DNA of 63,994 nt, filler included, from Reticulomyxa filosa (taxonomy: Eukaryota; Protista; Foraminifera): the NCBI GenBank assembly GCA_000512085.1. It is 24 parts of 24 records of this genome, joined end to end, with 100 filler letters (N's around TTAATTAATTAA, not from the genome) between each part and the next. Parts side by side here need not be neighbours in the genome. Positions count along the whole stretch, not along the records: positions 25,646 to 37,924 come from ASPP01005250.1; 23 more parts are not named here. The stretch is one strand, 5' to 3'. The notes beneath the pieces are model-generated. The model did not search any database. It saw only the letters and a program-made list of their open reading frames with translations, and was not told the DNA's origin. A program made the position numbers and the translations under genes. This document shows positions 26,160 through 37,888 of the stretch, one piece after another. Numbering within the stretch: the stretch's first letter is position 1; the number at the start of each line of letters is the position of its first letter.

Positions 26160-27651
26160 ACCTAATTCTTAACAAACTAAAAAGAGTCACTTGAGAGCTA
26201 AAAAAAAGGCAATATCTACCGAACTAAGAAACACCTTCCCCGAAAGAAGAACAATTCACAATTTGTAGATACACGAAAAATCACCCTACGTAAACAATAT
26301 ACAGAAAGCGGAAAAAATAAAATAAAATAAAACAAAAAGAATTCCCTCCTCCACGAAGGGAATTTCGACTACCAAAGACAAGCTGTAGTATCATAAGAAG
26401 AAGATAGTACAGTGGAGCCATCCTAGATGTAACTGGCTACTGTTTTGCCACTGGAAGAAACATCCACTCCAATTTCATAATCAGACGAATGCTGTTGCCT
26501 TTCTTTTTTGATCTCTTCATCCGTCTGCATGTCCTACCATCGGATGGTCCGATTGTATAAACAAGACACCACATGTATATACAGATTTATGTACATTTTC
26601 CTTCCCCCTTTTTCATCCCATTGCCTTACATGCAAACATATTACATTTTTGCTTTTTGAAATAACTTTTGGGAATAATGACCAAAGTTTTGGAAGTAAGT
26701 CGTATTTTCCTTGGCTCTCTTTTCTTGCCTCTTGTTGTGTGAGATATTTCATTCTTTGCGGTGGGTTTGTCTTTCGCTTTGCCTTTTGTTGCGGCACTAG
26801 CTCCATCTTTTTTGTTTGTCAAGTCAAGAGAAAGAGAGAGAGAGAGTAGTGTGATGTAGAAAAGGATGAGTAGAAAAAAAAAAGAAAGTGGAAACAATAC
26901 AAATGGATGCCTGCAAAGTAGTGTCTTCATTGTACTTGTACTCGAGTTTGCCCTCCATCAAGTATGGCTTTGTTTCCTAGCAAATTGTGTTTGTGGATTG
27001 CTCAAATACATAGTGCATTTTTTTTTTTTTTTAGCTCATTCAATTGGAAGGACAAATTCAATCAAAAAATAACAATGTCTTTTTTTTACATAGTTTATTT
27101 TTGTGGCTACATCTCAAAAACATTCCAAAAAAAAGAGTGAATGGAGAAAAGCTTTTCCAAGAGGGAAAAAAAATAGATACGGCATGGATAGTTGTGAGCC
27201 AAATAAAACCTGATCATTTTTCAAAGATGAAAAGGTTTGTCGAATTTGCTCGAGCTTATTCTTTTTTTTTTTGTAATGTAAAGAAGTCACGTTTGGATTT
27301 TTGATTGAGATTGCAAATCAAATCAAAAAGGTACAATAAAAAGAAGCTGACTTGCAAGTACTGGTTTTGTTGTCGCAATTGCTTAATTTGACGAAGCGCG
27401 AGTTGAAGATGACTTTGCGCTGCCGTCTGGAGATGTTCATTCGGACTGCATTGCAAAGTCTCCTTGCAACCAAGATAGCGGTATGGACATTCTGTTGTCA
27501 ATGGCTTGTCTCGACTTCCATATTGAGGGTACTGCAATTCCGTTGCGTCTTTTGCAGCTTGCTTGCACGGCATATCCATATAATCCATATTCTCATGGCA
27601 ACAGCCTTTTGTTGAAATTTCTTCTTGGTTATCTTCCTCTTCTTTTGACAT
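26160..27651 (-). CDS. TRAF-type zinc-finger protein, multi-exon (3' boundary approximate)
   Basis: ECPYRYLGCKETLQCSPNEHLQTAAQSHLQLA followed by a coiled coil; further exon-like blocks downstream. Confidence 0.6.
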
Positions 27652-28991: not shown

Positions 28992-31900
28992 TCAGAATGT
29001 TCCTCCGTATTGTCCTACAAAAAACTTCTGTTGAGATGTTAAACTATTTACGTTTTTCCAAATACTACCTTTCATTGATAAAGCACTTTGCATGCCCACT
29101 TTCCAGATAAGATCCACAGAACTCGTTTTAGTTAAATCGAAAATTTTGCTACTATTACTACTCCATAATCGAATTGTTCCATCATCAGAACATGACACCA
29201 ATTTTGAGCCATCAGGTGATACGTGAATGCAATTAACAGCTCCATTATGTCCTTCTAATACTTGAATTTCTTCAAGAGAAGAAATATCCAATATTCGAAT
29301 GGTTTTGTCACTTGAATATATAATAATTTTGGAACCATTTGACGATAACTGTACTCCATTTATCAACCCCTGACACCTGCCTGAACTGCAGCATCTTTTT
29401 CCAGTCAACATATCATAAAGTTGAATTCGATTATATGAACAATAAATAATTTTAGTGCCATCTGGAGATACTTGTATTTCTGTAATAAAATCGTATCCAT
29501 TTATTGATAGAATTAGGTTTCCAGATGATATATCATATATTTGAATTCTTCTATCTATTAAACCTAATATAACTTTAGATTCATCTCGTGAAAATTGCAT
29601 TACTCGTACATCTGAAAAAGATTCAATATCTTTAAGTATACGCCTGGATAGTATACACCATAATCTTACCCTTCTATCTGCAAGAGTAAGCAGTTTGGAC
29701 CCATCTATAGAAAGTTGTACTCTCTTTATGCCAGAATATTCTTCAAAGCAGTAAATTAGTTCTCCTGATGTTATATCCCACATGTTGACTGTCCTATCAT
29801 CCAACGAATATGACAGAAATTTGGAACCATCTGGTAAAAATTTTACTTCCCGCACTCGACCTGAATGCTCTTTCAATAGTTGAAGTTGCTTTCCCGATAA
29901 CACGTCCCATATTCGAATTGTTTTGTCATCTGAATATGACAAAATTTTAGAGCCATCTGGTGAAAATAGAACTCCACATACAATATTTGAATGACCTTCA
30001 AAAACTCGAATTTGTTTCCCAGATTGTGTATCCCAGAGCCTAACTGTTTTATCTGCTGAAGATGACACAATCTTAGAACCATCAGGTGAAAATTGTACTC
30101 CTGTTAGAATATCTAGGTATTTGTCTGTTAGTTGGAAGTTTCTTTCTAGAGCCAGATCCAGTACGTGGATAGTAATACAACATATTAAAATTTTCGGTTC
30201 TTTTGGAAAAAATTCCACACATTCTATACAAGTGAAATGTTCAAACCATCGAATTTGCTTTCCAGACAAAACATCCCATACTCGTACTGTATAATCATTC
30301 GAATTAGACACAATTCTAGAGCTGTCAGGCGAAAATCGTGCTGCTAGTATATTTCCCGTATGTTTTCCTAGCACATGAATTTGTTTTCCAGAAGACAGAT
30401 CCCAGATCTGGATTGTTTTATCTTTTAAGCATGACAAGATCTTTGAGTCGTCTGGTGATAATTCAATTTTTGTTATAGGTATATGTCCTTCCAAAATTTG
30501 GATTTGTTCACCTGATGATATATCCCATATTCTGATAATGGCGTCGTCGGAGTATGATACAATTTTTGATCCATTCGATGTAAATTGCATCTTATGCATA
30601 TGACTTGAATGCGCTTTTAATAATGGAAATCGCATCTCGGATGATACATCGTATATTTGAATTGTATCGTCTTTTAAACCGTATACAATTTTGGAACAAT
30701 TGGGTGAAAATTGAGCCATTTCTACTTGATTTAAGTACTCTTTCAACGAACCAATTTGTTTTCCAGAAGCCACGTCCCATATTTTAATTGTATAATCCCT
30801 TGAAAAAGACATAACTTTAAAGCCATCCGCTGAAAATTTTGCTACAGGTAGGCATTCGTCCAACAATTCAGTTTGTTGACTTGATAATATATCGTATATA
30901 CAAATATTAAAGCAGCATAACATAATTTTGGAACCATTAGGTGAAAATTGTACAATTGTTTCTGGACTTGCAACCCATTTCAACACGTGGAGTTGTTTTC
31001 CCGACAAGGCATCCCATATTCGAACAGTCGCATCGTATGAACAAGACACTATCTTTGTTCCATCCGGAGAAAATTGAATCGCATATACTCCATTTGAATG
31101 CCCTCGTAGACATTCATATCCTCCAAAGTATACGCCATTCATTGATGCATTTGTGAAATTGACTTTGTCCAAGCAAGATTGATAAAAACTCACATGATCT
31201 AAATTGGCATTAGTAAGATTAGTCCCTTTAAGAAGTGCACGGTCTAAAATTGCATAAGGAATTTTAATGTTATTCCAATTTTGATGATCCATGTTTACAT
31301 TTGCTGAGCTGAGTATGGTGATTGCGTTTGCTGCGGCAATGCTCACCCGCTCATTGTTTTTTGATGACTCAACGATCTGAAATAGTCTCGATGTTAGATT
31401 TGTGAATATTGGATTAATATCGTGGATTCTTTCTGCAATAAAATGAATAATTCCTAATTCTTCATTTAACAATTTACAATTAATAAACAACTTCGAAACA
31501 TCTGTTTCAAATTTTTGTTGAGATTGTTGAACAATAATATTAGGTTTCCATGAAAGGATGTCAAATATGATTTTTTGTGCTGCACAGTATTCTTGACACG
31601 ACTTATGTAGAAATTGATATTTATTATCACCAGATCTTCTTAGTACATATTTTTGCGACACTATCACCACTGAAGTACTTATCCCAAATATTTTGTGTCT
31701 TTACAACTAAACTATTGATAGTTTTGTTCATTGTTTTTTCTTGTAACTTTTCATCCATATACTTAGCCTCTGTTTCCTTTGCTGAATCTAATTTACTCAA
31801 AATGTTATCATTTTCATATCCTTCATAACCACTTTCTGTTGCAACTTGATTTCCTTGAGTGAACATTTCAAACGCTAAATCTTGACAATATTGTTGAAAT

Positions 31901-34900
31901 ACTGACTTGATTTTTTTGGCATTTGTTTGAATTCGTAATTCTGATAATTTAATTGAAATACGTTCAACATGGGTGTCAATCCATTGTTCATTGAACTCTT
32001 CGTACACTTGTGACTTTGATATTTTAGTTCCAATTGGATATTGTTTCATTAACGATGGTAATACAGTTAATATCATTTGAAGTAAAAATGGCTCTTCCAT
32101 CATTTTATTTAAACTTGGGTAATTGCTCAACAATTTCTCATTTAGTTGTACTGTCCAATCCAAATTATCATTTACTTTATTGTTTTTATTTAGTTTCACA
32201 AATTTATCAATATATTCATTTATCTGTTCCTTTGAAAAAGGCCACAAATATATCATTGAGGTCATCATGTTTTTTGAACCAATTAAAACATGTTGAATAT
32301 CTTTATCATTTAATACATGACTTCGACACGTTACTATAATTTTTGCATTCCATTCACTTAAATTGAATCGATCGTAAAAATATCTCTTCGTGCTATCTTT
32401 ATTATATTTGCCAAATATTTGATCAAATCCGTCCAAAATAAACACAAACGACATATTTTCACGAACGACATCAATTATCTCTTTGTTGATTTGTCTTGTT
32501 TGTAAAGCTTGAGAGATTATCTGTTTTTCATTCAATTCATCGTACCATTGCGGCAGCGATATATAGACAGGAATAGATATCGTAGAACCATTTATATATG
32601 ATTCCCATAAAAATTGTTCTAAATGACGACAAAATAAACTCTTTCCTGACCCCGATTTTCCTTGTAATATCATTATTTGTTGTTTTTGTTGTTCACTTTT
32701 CTTTTCATCTTTTTCTTCCAACAAATCAATTATATGTTGGTGACAATCATACATATTGTTTTTTTTGTTATTATCGTCGTCGATATATGGGTAATCATTT
32801 GCTTGCAATGTTATATATGTCTCAAGGGCTTGTGATATGGCTATATCTTCTTCTAATTCTTGTTTTTTTGATTTTTTAAGATCAATACAACATCAGCACA
32901 ACTTGCTGGATTCATTTCACCCATAATGTATTTCTTGAAATATTCAAATAAAATAACATAAATAGCCTTTCCTTTTAAATGTATCGGATTGAATTTGCAA
33001 AGTTGATCGTAAACAAATTTGGTCAATATTAATGAAATATCATTGCTTGCATTAATTTGTTCTTCGGTTTTATTTTTTAATTGTGGAGGTTTTAGTATCC
33101 GAATTTCTGAATGTGGTTTAAAACGAGTTGCAATTTTCTTTATTTCCTTTTCATCAATCCATTCACAGATTATATCATTGAATTTAATCAATGTTACATC
33201 ACTTGCTTGTTTTAATTCCTCTTCCGACGTATTACTGGGTTTCCATCCTCGAATGTATTCATAAAATAAATGAGACAATTTTGGATTCTCAATATCAGAA
33301 TACCCTTCCAATGTCGTAAATTTTTTTAATGTTGCTTGCATTTCCACATAAACATCATACTTTGGAACATATAATTTAACAGAGTGAAATCTATAATGTG
33401 TTTTTGATTGCCTGGTAAAAAAATCTTCATCTTCAGAAACTATCAGATTAAATTGTTCCGCTTTTTTTATGACCGTCATAATCGACTGTAGTTGCGTTGG
33501 ATTATCACATAAAATTGTAAATCTTCCAACATCAAATGCTTGCTTGCAATCGTTGCCGTAATCAAAGTGTATTTGTTCTAACAACTTTGCTCTATCTTTT
33601 ACTTTCAATGGCTTTACCACAGTAATTAAATGTTTTTGTAATTCTATCATTAAATTAATTATTTCCGTGCTCAGAATTGCATTTTCACTTCTTGTTATTA
33701 AATCTTCTAAATTTATTGCATGTTGTAATATTTTTCTGGCTTGCAGTTGATACGTCAATCCGAATTTAATTGAATAATAGCATTGATAGTGATTACTTTT
33801 AGTAGGAAGTGAAGTATCATTGTCACAAATTGAATGCTCCGAATCAAGAAAAAGTACCTTTACGACAGAGGCAACAGTTGATTGTTTACAATTTGGACAA
33901 TTGTAGAATGTTTTATCAGGTATAAATGTGATAGCATCAAATCCAATGTTTACCCATACCAAAAGTTTTGCTTTTGATGCCAAACAATCTTTATTTACGC
34001 AGTAGCCCTGCAAATTTATTCCTGGCTTCGTTTCTCCAATTTCCTCAATTTCTTCTTCTTTTTTTTCTATTTTATCTGATGGCTTTTCTTCAATTTTTTC
34101 GTCTTCTGTTTTCTTTGGTTGGCATTAACAAAACAATATTAAATATATGTAAATAAATAAATGAAGTTGATTATAATAGATTAAACCTGTTCATTTATTT
34201 TATCTTCTATTGGCTCTTCTATCTTCTTTGTCTTTGGATCTTCATCTTGAATTTCAGACTTTTTTCATTTTGTTATAGCAAATATGTCATCAAAAAGAAA
34301 TGCCGTATTTTGTCTTTGAACAAAAATATACATTTGAATTCAGCAATGTGGCAATCATCTTTTCAACAGCCAAGCCTATGTTTCCATTATTTTCTTCAAG
34401 TTTTTTCTTCACTTCCTCTTCTCCTTTTTTGTCAATTATATCTGTGCATAATTTGAGTAATGCCTTCATTTCTGTCGCATATCTTCCTTGCTCTAATTTT
34501 TGATCTTGCATTCCTCCTAATAGTTTTATACTATCTTTGTTATTGTGACAACTTAGGATTCGATTCACATTCAATTGGGTTTCATCATTGTAAATTGTCG
34601 CCTTGACCTTGTGATCAAACACCACATCAGCGAATAAACTTTATGAAAAAACAAAAACTATAACTGCATTATATTTCAACTCAATATTTAATAAAAAATA
34701 ACCTCATCTCGTGTAGATATTAGATGATCACAGCCATATATGATACCACCAGCCGCTGCTTTCAAAGTAGTTATTCCTTAATAATACATTACACAAAGGC
34801 TTTTTTTTCATTTTTTTTAATTCAAAAAGTAAGAACGATAAGCGTGTAAATACAGTCTACTATTTGTTTATTTCATAAAATGTGTGATCTTTCATTCTAA

Positions 34901-34951
34901 TTAACCTTGTTGGATATTTTTTATACTTTTGCTTGATTTCAGTTCCTCCAT
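28992..34951 (-). CDS. NLR-like STAND protein: UBA-like/Zn-binding N-terminus, RelA/SpoT-like domain, NACHT, pentapeptide repeats and ~15 WD40 repeats; two 1-nt frameshifts in A-runs
   Basis: Walker [10 protein letters not shown], Walker [18 protein letters not shown], winged-helix [11 protein letters not shown], pentapeptides [25 protein letters not shown]40 [19 protein letters not shown]; small 5' exons near 34951-34906, 34778-34703 and 34625-34330. Confidence 0.85.
33246..33611 (-). other. RelA/SpoT-like synthetase (Pol-beta nucleotidyltransferase fold) domain inside the NACHT-WD40 gene
   Basis: Ordered motifs [13 protein letters not shown] / FDVGRFTI / EDEDFF / HYRFHSV / VEMQAT / SHLFYEYIR parallel the RSH synthetase motifs. 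Confidence 0.65.
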
Positions 34952-36949
34952 TCTTTAGAAATTATGGAATGTCTACACAGGCTGTAGTGACAATAAAAAC
35001 CGGAGTAGACGTTTTAACCCGACTATTTCAATAAACAAAAACACAACGATCAAGAAAGATACTAACTTTTTGCTTTACAGGTATTTGAGAATAAGCAATG
35101 AAAGACAAAAAAAACAGACTCCAAAAATTTGAAAAAAGGAGACGAGGAAAAAAGCTGTTGAGATTTTTTTAGAGTCAACACTATTGTCCTTTCAATTTCA
35201 AATTTACAGATTTTTGGTCTTTTTTGCAGTAAAAAATATCTTGCTTCATTTCTATGTTCAGGATGCTCTACAACAGTGACAACCTTTAAAGGTTTTATTC
35301 AAAGTTGTATTATGCTTTTCTAAAGAGCATGTTTTATACATTGATTTTGTTTTTGTTTAAGAAAATTTAATTTGTTGAATACTGTTCATTTCATTTTTAT
35401 GTGCAAGGTTTTTATAAGAGTATTGCACCAAGTTTTGTTCCTTGTAAGAAAGAGATTATTAGCAATTTAGGTTCTCTGTAAAAAGAAAATAAGATAACAC
35501 ATTATCAGTGAACTCTTCATAACTGAGATGTAAGCCCACTTGTCTTCTGTTAAACCAATTGCTTCTGAAGCATTTTTAAATTTTAATTACCTTTCTCTTG
35601 CTACTGCACTAAATTGTTATTGTACCCAAGTTTTTACAAACAAAAACTCGCTTTTTAATAATGAGAGTGATACAACCTCATTAATGTCATATTTTTTTTT
35701 TATTGTTTGTTGCATTTAATTTATTTTCGGTACAACAGCTACTACTTTTTTTATTAAAAATCATTGCGAAATTCAAGAAACTCGAAAAGAGTATTTTAAT
35801 TTCTACTTTGCAAACGAATAAGCCTGACAAAGTTCGTTGCAATAAACATTATAATAGATGTTGTTTTTTCATCTGACATATCGAAAAAACATAGTCACTC
35901 CATGGATATTAAATCGCAAATGCATGTGCTATATTTTTACTGAGTACAATTAATATTCATGCTATCTTTTTTTTTATTCCGTTTTTACTTCTATTTGATG
36001 ACAGACTAAAATCTTTTTTTCAGTACATAGCTGTTGCAACGACGTCCCTATTTTTTTAAATGTTAGCAAAAAAGAAAATCACATTTAAAGAAAGAGTCTA
36101 CTCCAAAGTAAACAATCTACAACAGGACTCCATTTTTGTGGGTCCTTTTGAGATAAAGACAGAGAACATAGCCGCAAAGCCAAGTATCCTCAGTACTAAG
36201 TCGATTGTGCACCCTTCTTCTATCTGGTAACAATCAAGTGTTTGTTATCTTGCTGCTTTGCACGAAAAATAAGTCGCATTTTATTTATGGGAGTTTTCGT
36301 TTTCTCGTAAATTTGTTTTTTTAGGTCTAAAACGGTGTCTTTTGATTCAATGTTTACCGAATAAGTGCTACGGTATAACTTCTGATAAAGCTGAAAACAG
36401 AAAGTTTGTCAATACAACGCACATTAGTAAAATCTTCACGAATTTCTAAAGACAAAATAATTGAACAAATATTTGCATCATATTGTCACGTTTAGTGTTG
36501 TCAAACCAACAGAAAAAATATATAAAATTAGGCTGAGCGTTTTTGAAAGAGCTGTTTTTTTTTACCAACAAACGTCAACTAAAAATACATGTATATTACC
36601 CTTTTTTTTTTTCTCGAAGATGTGGCGTTTTCTTTAATAAGTCTTGATTATCGATCACCAACAAAATTTTTATTTGGAGGAAGGAAGTAAAAAAGACAAA
36701 ACTTCCCACAATCTTTTTCTGGAAGCCACTTAAATTGCAATATATATTTTTGAGATTATTTTGGCATGTAACATTTATGATGTGTTGACTGAAAAAAATC
36801 AACAACACTTTCGAAAAAAGATTCATTGCTGATATTTTATTCACTTTTTCATTCCCACTAAATTTTGCATATGCACGTGCGTGGTGTTTTGTGAACCGTT
36901 AAGTCAGAATTTTTTTATTTTAGACTATCTACCAATACACGCTTGCGCA

Positions 36950-37888
36950 ATGGCAGAAGAGTCAGGAAAAGAAGAAATTAAAGATTTTTTAAAAGTATTG
37001 AGACCACAGTATGTGAACAAGATTTTAGAGCAATTATTCGACGTTTTAGAATGTGACGACATGGGAAGCGTAATCGTCCTACCGGATGAAAAATGGCGGG
37101 GTATATTCAAAGCAGTAGGGCTGAGTGAAGGTCAACAACCAAAACTATTGAATGCATTGAACGAATGGCGCAGAAAAAAAAATTTGGAACCACTTGATGT
37201 CAATGCATTTATGAGAGGAGGTACCGAAAAACCGCAGTTAAAAAAAAATAGAGTTGCTCTTTTAGTACATTTTCAGTTTATAAAGTGACCAATGGATTTT
37301 TTATTTTTGGAAAAACATTATTTCATTGTAAACAAACAAAATTGAAAGACCATCAAAACCCGTTGAAGCAAACCCCGAAAGCAGTAAAGAACCCACCAAA
37401 CCAAATATCCAAAATAACGAAGAAATCAAAGAAGAAAAACCAAAATGTGAGAAAGAGCCTTTTCCAAAGGATAGCGAGAAAGCCAAAGAACCTCCTCTAA
37501 AAGATGATGAGAAAGCCAAAGAACCTTCTCTAAAAGATGATGAGAATGCCAAAGAGCATCTCCCAAAGGAGAAACCCAAAGAACTAGTTCCAAAACGAGT
37601 AGAACCTGAAGAACAGCCCACTCCAGCAAAGAGCGAAAGCAAAAGCAAACCCGGCCAAAACATCCTCAACAGTGAAAAAAATGCCACTGACGAAGATGTT
37701 AAAGACGGAGCAACTCCTGTTAAAAAAAAAGGAGAATATGAGCATGGAAAAGTCGAAAAAAAAAAAGAGTATGGAAAAGTCGCAAATGTTAATTCGAGGT
37801 CTGACACTGTTGCTTTTGACTTGAAGGTGATATTGACAATACTGCACATTTTTTTAAATTCGTGCAAATGGAAGAAGAGGAGGAAAAA

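Follow-up and report, generated by a model that had tools for sequence, protein, structure and literature searches.

A Reticulomyxa filosa family of NLR-like proteins joins a RelA/SpoT-type synthetase domain to NACHT and WD40 repeats

We analyzed a 63,994-nucleotide stretch of DNA (the window) from the foraminiferan Reticulomyxa filosa (GCA_000512085.1), made of 24 parts of 24 records joined with 100 filler letters between them, and in it a minus-strand locus at 28992-34951. An earlier reading of the sequence, here the original prediction, had described this locus as a NOD-like receptor (NLR) with a RelA/SpoT-like effector. The locus proves to be one copy of an NLR-like gene family, large in Reticulomyxa, whose proteins are of the signal transduction ATPase with numerous domains (STAND) type. 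On balance we think it probable that the effector of this family is a Tas1/Apk-like nucleotide pyrophosphokinase, which would drain ATP through (p)ppApp, and that the window copy is decaying. The demonstrated part of this explanation is the RelA/SpoT homologue (RSH) fold, its motifs, the joining of the domains in one chain, seen in at least 40 paralogs, and strong purifying selection on the enzyme. The interest rests on the family more than on the window copy, which the original prediction had read as a functional sensor; that copy has broken frames and altered residues at the Lys of Syn1, at the N/H site and in Walker B.

The domain at 33153-33716, which the original prediction had assigned from its motifs, is an RSH-type synthetase fold as judged from its predicted structure. 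The Pfam profile RelA_SpoT (PF04607) matches the window piece with an E-value of 0.0026 and 18.4 bits, under the gathering cut-off of 27 bits; the same profile also matches 14 of the 16 family members and relatives that were aligned, and the paralog RFI_08856 reaches 30.2 bits summed over two copies of the domain. An AlphaFold model of a 390-residue window piece has a predicted local distance difference test score (pLDDT) of 88.8. With this model as query, RSH alarmone synthetases filled the top 37 rows in Foldseek, with Tas1 first (E 3e-6), and the top 11 rows in VIA, where Tas1 had a Z of 13.1 and a root-mean-square deviation of 3.5 over 170 residues (model 104-291), followed by RelQ (12.3), RelP (12.2 and 11.7) and CapRel (10.8). 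The best non-RSH nucleotidyltransferase stood at Z 7.9. Pieces of the locus were searched separately by reference, rather than as a joined spliced or read-through model. The single window sequence gave no match to PDB sequences with phmmer, while a family profile built without two clearly bacterial relatives placed Tas1 at the top (E 0.086) and aligned the Syn1 and DxxR region to it residue for residue. A stronger Tas1 match (E 9e-10) was set aside because its profile had included those two bacterial relatives, and a match to one further protein (P0096) was dismissed as a low-complexity false hit.

The motifs agree with this ranking. In the alignment, the family motif is the Tas1-type KxxxRxxxK...DY.GD...DxxR, and the layout shared with Apk2 and with Tas1/Apk1, the (p)ppApp synthetase of the Pseudomonas aeruginosa type VI secretion system (PDB 6OX6) that is the top structural and profile match, extends to ExQ and H..YE. 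The ATP site of Apk1 is formed by R330, K353, N370, E382 and an adjacent Gln (PMC12691689). Counting residues in the synthetase and Cys module from position 34025, R168 aligns directly to Apk1 R330, while K200, N215, E228 and Q230 correspond to the other ATP-site residues by spacing only. In an alignment to RelP, K200 falls at the KVKD Lys and N215 at the GYRSLH His; the His of YxSxH that the original prediction had read at H214 belongs instead at position 215, which is Asn in paralogs and Ser in the window. The toxSAS enzymes CapRel and FaRel2 and the small alarmone synthetases RelP and RelQ share the synthetase fold (Z 10.8-12.3), but the canonical Syn1 Ser is Arg in the Reticulomyxa family, the GYRSLH His is Asn, and those enzymes are not STAND fusions. 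Tas1/Apk1, in turn, is a secreted toxin tip, whereas the Reticulomyxa domain is the cytosolic N-terminal part of a eukaryotic NACHT-WD40 protein, at about 15% identity. No PAAR or MuF delivery domain and no adjacent Tis1 or Aph1 immunity gene was seen in the window piece or in six further loci (L003-L008).

The comparisons point to Tas1/Apk1 as the nearest characterized relative, which would favor (p)ppApp over ppGpp or tRNA modification. The original prediction had left all three products open; they narrow to a Tas1/Apk1 likeness, with small alarmone synthetases within one Z unit. Two facts weigh against (p)ppApp: Tas1 leads RelQ and RelP by less than 1.5 Z, at the low identity given above, and SaEAS, a structural relative of Apk1, yields both (p)ppApp and (p)ppGpp (PMC12691689). 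Since SaEAS is promiscuous, the synthetase fold does not fix product or acceptor specificity.

Homology searches brought up R. filosa records of the family in numbers well above one hundred, many of them partial. The whole core is held by 91 proteins, a few of them environmental, and 40 paralogs carry core, NACHT and WD40 in a single chain; at one locus (L005) an unbroken frame of 1883 codons spans all three. At the DNA level, the family thus has the synthetase in the same chain as the NACHT, as had been claimed, and shows the NWD-type layout of effector, NACHT and repeat sensor. The catalytic Asp, Glu and other motif residues are 93-99% conserved across paralogs (K143 in 99/104, D165 in 100/103, R168 in 99/103, N215 in 103/111, E228 in 96/98 and Q230 in 103/106), and a strict pattern requiring every motif was matched by 28 of 42 long family proteins. 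We compared six paralog loci pairwise for the ratio of nonsynonymous to synonymous substitution rates (dN/dS), which was 0.073 for the synthetase, 0.12 for the Cys module, 0.20 for NACHT, 0.23 for the linker and 0.36 for the WD40 repeats, all rough values as dS was near 1. The synthetase is the most constrained domain, under strong purifying selection. This pairing of a conserved enzyme with a repeat sensor that varies is the pattern expected of an NLR whose effector is an enzyme.

Three family members depart from the common layout or setting. RFI_08856 (P0105) has two tandem Cys-synthetase units ahead of NACHT. In a 1017-residue RFI protein annotated as 'vcbs repeat-containing' (P0077), the synthetase lies at residues 708-923 after an unrelated 700-residue region; this different architecture forms an early branch in the family tree. 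At L008:1099-9838, a WD40 gene stands head-to-head with a paralog (P0124), recalling paired NLRs.

The front part of the window locus is the annotated gene RFI_06221, which bears out the foraminiferan origin, and the peptides quoted in the original prediction were all found where it had placed them, in the same order. On the minus strand, the domains run from a CUE/UBA-like bundle through an acidic linker, a four-Cys module, the RelA/SpoT-type synthetase, a helical linker, NACHT and pentapeptide repeats to 16 WD40 repeats. The WD40 array had been foreseen, at about 15 repeats. A single minus-strand gene had been proposed; strand and domain order hold, but in the assembly the coding sequence is split by two breaks over three successive long frames (34124-32856, 32892-31630 and 31700-28995), each free of in-frame stops; ahead of the first lie two short exons, spliced at GT-AG introns. 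The features of the locus are as follows.

34906-34951, minus strand: putative first exon of the original prediction, with an ATG and a GT donor as claimed; it splices open only to acceptors from 34534 downstream and not to the start of the exon 2 frame, and the NCBI model uses a different first exon
34335-34487, minus strand: CUE/UBA-like three-helix bundle, exon 2, with the exon end at 34332 at a GT donor
34187-34258, minus strand: short acidic linker exon flanked by two GT-AG introns, with splice sites that agree with NCBI model RFI_06221; next exon from 34112
33735-34025, minus strand: four-Cys beta-sandwich module (C9, C14, C43, C46), from Cys conservation and a model
33153-33716, minus strand: RelA/SpoT-type pyrophosphokinase domain of predicted Tas1/Apk type, about 190 residues in one exon, from profile, AlphaFold model, Foldseek, VIA and alignment
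32871-33152, minus strand: helical linker from synthetase to NACHT, all-helical in the model and also in paralogs
32863-32877, minus strand: frame break 1, at neighboring A6 and A7 runs where the frames switch; paralogs read through
32197-32676, minus strand: NACHT NTPase core, as had been predicted (Pfam NACHT, E 6.2e-12)
32638-32661, minus strand: Walker A of NACHT, intact
32419-32442, minus strand: Walker B of NACHT, DGFDQ where paralogs have DGFDE
31650-31654, minus strand: frame break 2, in an A5 run; paralogs read through
31130-31253, minus strand: pentapeptide repeats, visible in translation, with PF00805 listed for many paralogs
29160-31102, minus strand: unusually degenerate array of 16 WD40 repeats, enough for about two propellers (Pfam WD40, E 4e-89)
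28992-29159, minus strand: conserved C-terminal tail and stop codon, from translation and paralog comparison

From its sequence, the window copy is quite probably a decayed or strongly impaired paralog, weakly active or dead. Its synthetase keeps K143, D165, R168, E228, Q230 and H252 but carries R147K, K151Q, K200E and N215S relative to the paralogs, and position 151, the Syn1 Lys, is K in 107 of 108 of them. It deviates at 11 of 93 conserved columns, a count matched or exceeded by 4% of paralogs, and its synthetase dN against paralogs is doubled (0.176 vs. 0.083). The Walker B Glu, kept in 79/79 paralogs, is Gln. Its WD40 repeats show 25 deviations, above every one of 38 paralogs, and the lowest repeat-to-repeat identity (0.26 vs. 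a paralog median of 0.54), though the repeat pattern was tuned on the window copy and repeat registration can inflate both the deviation count and the identity gap. The copy has neither a complete active site, by the four substitutions above, nor an open frame with both Walker motifs intact.

Several observations count against decay. The NACHT dN/dS is not raised (0.16 vs. 0.20), and D165, R168, E228 and Q230 are intact. Each of the frame breaks comes down to a single base within an A-run, where a sequencing error may be the cause, and breaks are also common in paralog contigs (four of six fetched loci). Acidic motifs of the ExDD type occur in active RelA, so K200E by itself need not harm. A doubtful but serious alternative is that the window copy is live, its breaks being sequencing errors, and serves, next to active partner paralogs, as a sensor or decoy with a weak enzyme. 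The A-run breaks and the three stop-free frames suit this, as does the confinement of faster change mainly to the synthetase and Cys module, with normal dN in NACHT and linker; against it, the sensor side has been hit as well: Walker B has changed from E to Q, and the WD40 set is more eroded than in any paralog compared. The frame breaks are easier to explain away than the substitutions, and decay remains our preferred account of this copy.

For intact family members, the favored explanation would work as follows. The WD40 propellers would sense a non-self or invader ligand and relieve autoinhibition; NACHT would swap ADP for ATP and oligomerize; and the N-terminal enzyme, released or clustered, would thereby be switched on. 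It would transfer pyrophosphate from ATP to the 3'-OH of ATP, ADP or AMP, giving (p)ppApp and depleting ATP, so that whichever part of the reticulopodial syncytium is infected or has fused wrongly would die locally or be sealed off. We infer this scheme from STAND biology, by analogy with HET-E and bacterial NACHT proteins (10.1101/2022.07.19.500537). Tas1 itself produces (p)ppApp with ATP depletion (PMC8118318).

Other outputs of the enzyme can be imagined. The enzyme might instead yield low levels of (p)ppGpp or mixed (p)ppNpp as a messenger, either for a downstream protein of the host or as a means to manipulate bacterial prey or symbionts. RelQ, RelP and SaEAS are close behind Tas1, a messenger has been put forward for fungal RelA_SpoT NLRs (PMC4986451), and a mild output would make dozens of copies more tolerable. 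We nevertheless regard it as unlikely: Syn1 is of Tas1 type, the closest sequence relatives are toxin-tip-like, and no receptor or hydrolase partner adjoins the gene in the fetched loci. Less likely still is pyrophosphorylation of tRNA 3'-CCA ends, blocking translation as by CapRel or FaRel2. CapRel is a sensor-fused defense enzyme and gave the longest coverage of the model (104-358, Z 10.8), but it ranks under Tas1 and the small synthetases in both Foldseek and VIA, and no PADLOC model matches the domain. That the family is a non-catalytic RSH-like scaffold throughout, or selfish repeat-like DNA without a role in defense, is very improbable given the conserved catalytic residues and a synthetase dN/dS that is the lowest of all domains, even though nearly all members score under the Pfam cut-off and many copies are broken or partial.

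The RelA_SpoT-NACHT-WD40 architecture is not new. As the original prediction had stated, RelA_SpoT N-terminal domains are already listed for fungal NLRs, with the same three-part layout and an RSH-type effector, where they are rare (among 4613 Sordariales NLRs, 14 T-NACHT cases, which make up 82% of the RelA_SpoT class; PMC4986451; PMC12258605). In Reticulomyxa, by contrast, a single genome has at least 40 unbroken copies, and the chain also includes pentapeptide repeats and modules of CUE-like and four-Cys type. Neither the homology searches nor a scan of 1.84 billion proteins recovered a fungal sequence, so a common origin with the fungal class is not shown. Podospora HET-E and HET-D, of the NWD family, share the effector-NACHT-WD40 order, internally similar repeats (paralog median 0.54) and a syncytial organism, but they have a HET/TIR-like effector in place of the RSH-type enzyme; the likeness drawn here concerns architecture. 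The new elements are a family greatly expanded in a rhizarian, its Apk-like subtype, and a metagenome in which the same cassette lies beside a bacterial-type recA. Our literature searches, with subscription journals outside their coverage, found nothing relevant on NACHT with RelA in Reticulomyxa or foraminifera, and no characterized RSH-effector NLR appeared in the literature searched.

The Cys-synthetase-linker cassette also occurs in environmental sequences (L001, L002 and L012). In further metagenome sequence (L009:2-2504 and L010; SRR7467839, JGI 3300022690), an intronless gene at 37% identity lies 300 bases downstream of a bacterial-type recA that is at most 63% identical to that of any GTDB genome. 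The gene encodes a hydrophobic signal-like start and then the Cys module, synthetase, linker and opening part of a NACHT, and is broken by two in-frame TAG stops (L009 1254 and 1917). This context, on one short contig, hints at exchange of the cassette with an intracellular bacterium, as has been reported for other NACHT clades (10.1101/2022.07.19.500537). A second candidate bacterial copy (L011:1-4700) was rejected: AT-rich eukaryote-like DNA turns into 59% GC bacterial DNA inside the synthetase domain, and the contig is probably a metagenome chimera. Beyond the environmental sequences, the closest are bacterial Apk-like, toxin-tip-like proteins with the same motifs, one of them named RHS repeat-associated, across a long branch. 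The family tree, which has a long stem and was built with no canonical RSH, Tas1 or fungal domains as outgroup, therefore yields neither donor nor direction of transfer. Pattern scans of metagenome, genome and viral contigs with narrow patterns, and tblastn in phages, gave no relatives. Atlas and BFVD fold searches returned similar synthetase domains in large phage proteins and in clusters that were giant-virus, diatom-containing or TPR-fused.

At the N-terminus, the UBA-like bundle of the original prediction fared less well. Its motif is present in about 30 paralogs, but Pfam CUE matches only 4 of 20 (best E 1.6e-4) and not the window copy, and an EF-Ts N-terminus profile gives E 0.2. In the four-Cys module, three Cys are invariant across paralogs and one is at least 90% conserved; the module is probably Zn-binding. 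Its model (pLDDT 89) found nothing above Z 5.2 and no convincing match among PDB folds. Atlas look-alikes were unnamed eukaryotic clusters, some of them rotifer, and weakly a ubiquitin-fused cluster; a viral fold search with a longer model also returned ubiquitin-annotated giant-virus proteins. As speculation, the Cys module and CUE-like bundle may link the receptor to ubiquitin control.

Two other open reading frames were judged by eye and have no Pfam support: a piece at 27256-27651 (minus strand) that resembles a TRAF-type zinc finger and then a coiled coil, and a 135-residue frame at 36881-37288 (plus strand) that resembles a SAM-type helical domain, followed at about 37350-37650 by a lysine/glutamate-rich repetitive stretch.

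In its widest form, the explanation is of an expanded innate-immune or self/non-self system in foraminifera: dozens of NLR-like receptors would trigger a bacterial-type (p)ppApp synthetase that kills or walls off part of the syncytium by ATP depletion, a first eukaryotic (p)ppApp-making immune effector whose Cys-synthetase-NACHT cassette would have been exchanged with an intracellular bacterium; we offer this tentatively, as a possibility short of probable. ppGpp was found to occur in eukaryotic cells that lack a known synthetase (PMC8118318). The domain of about 190 residues, contained in one exon, is amenable to assay in E. coli or yeast, and at least 40 unbroken genes with a strongly conserved Tas1-like active site provide material to ask whether alarmone chemistry serves a eukaryote as the output of immunity or cell death. 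The family would offer a first way into the study of immunity and self-recognition in Rhizaria.

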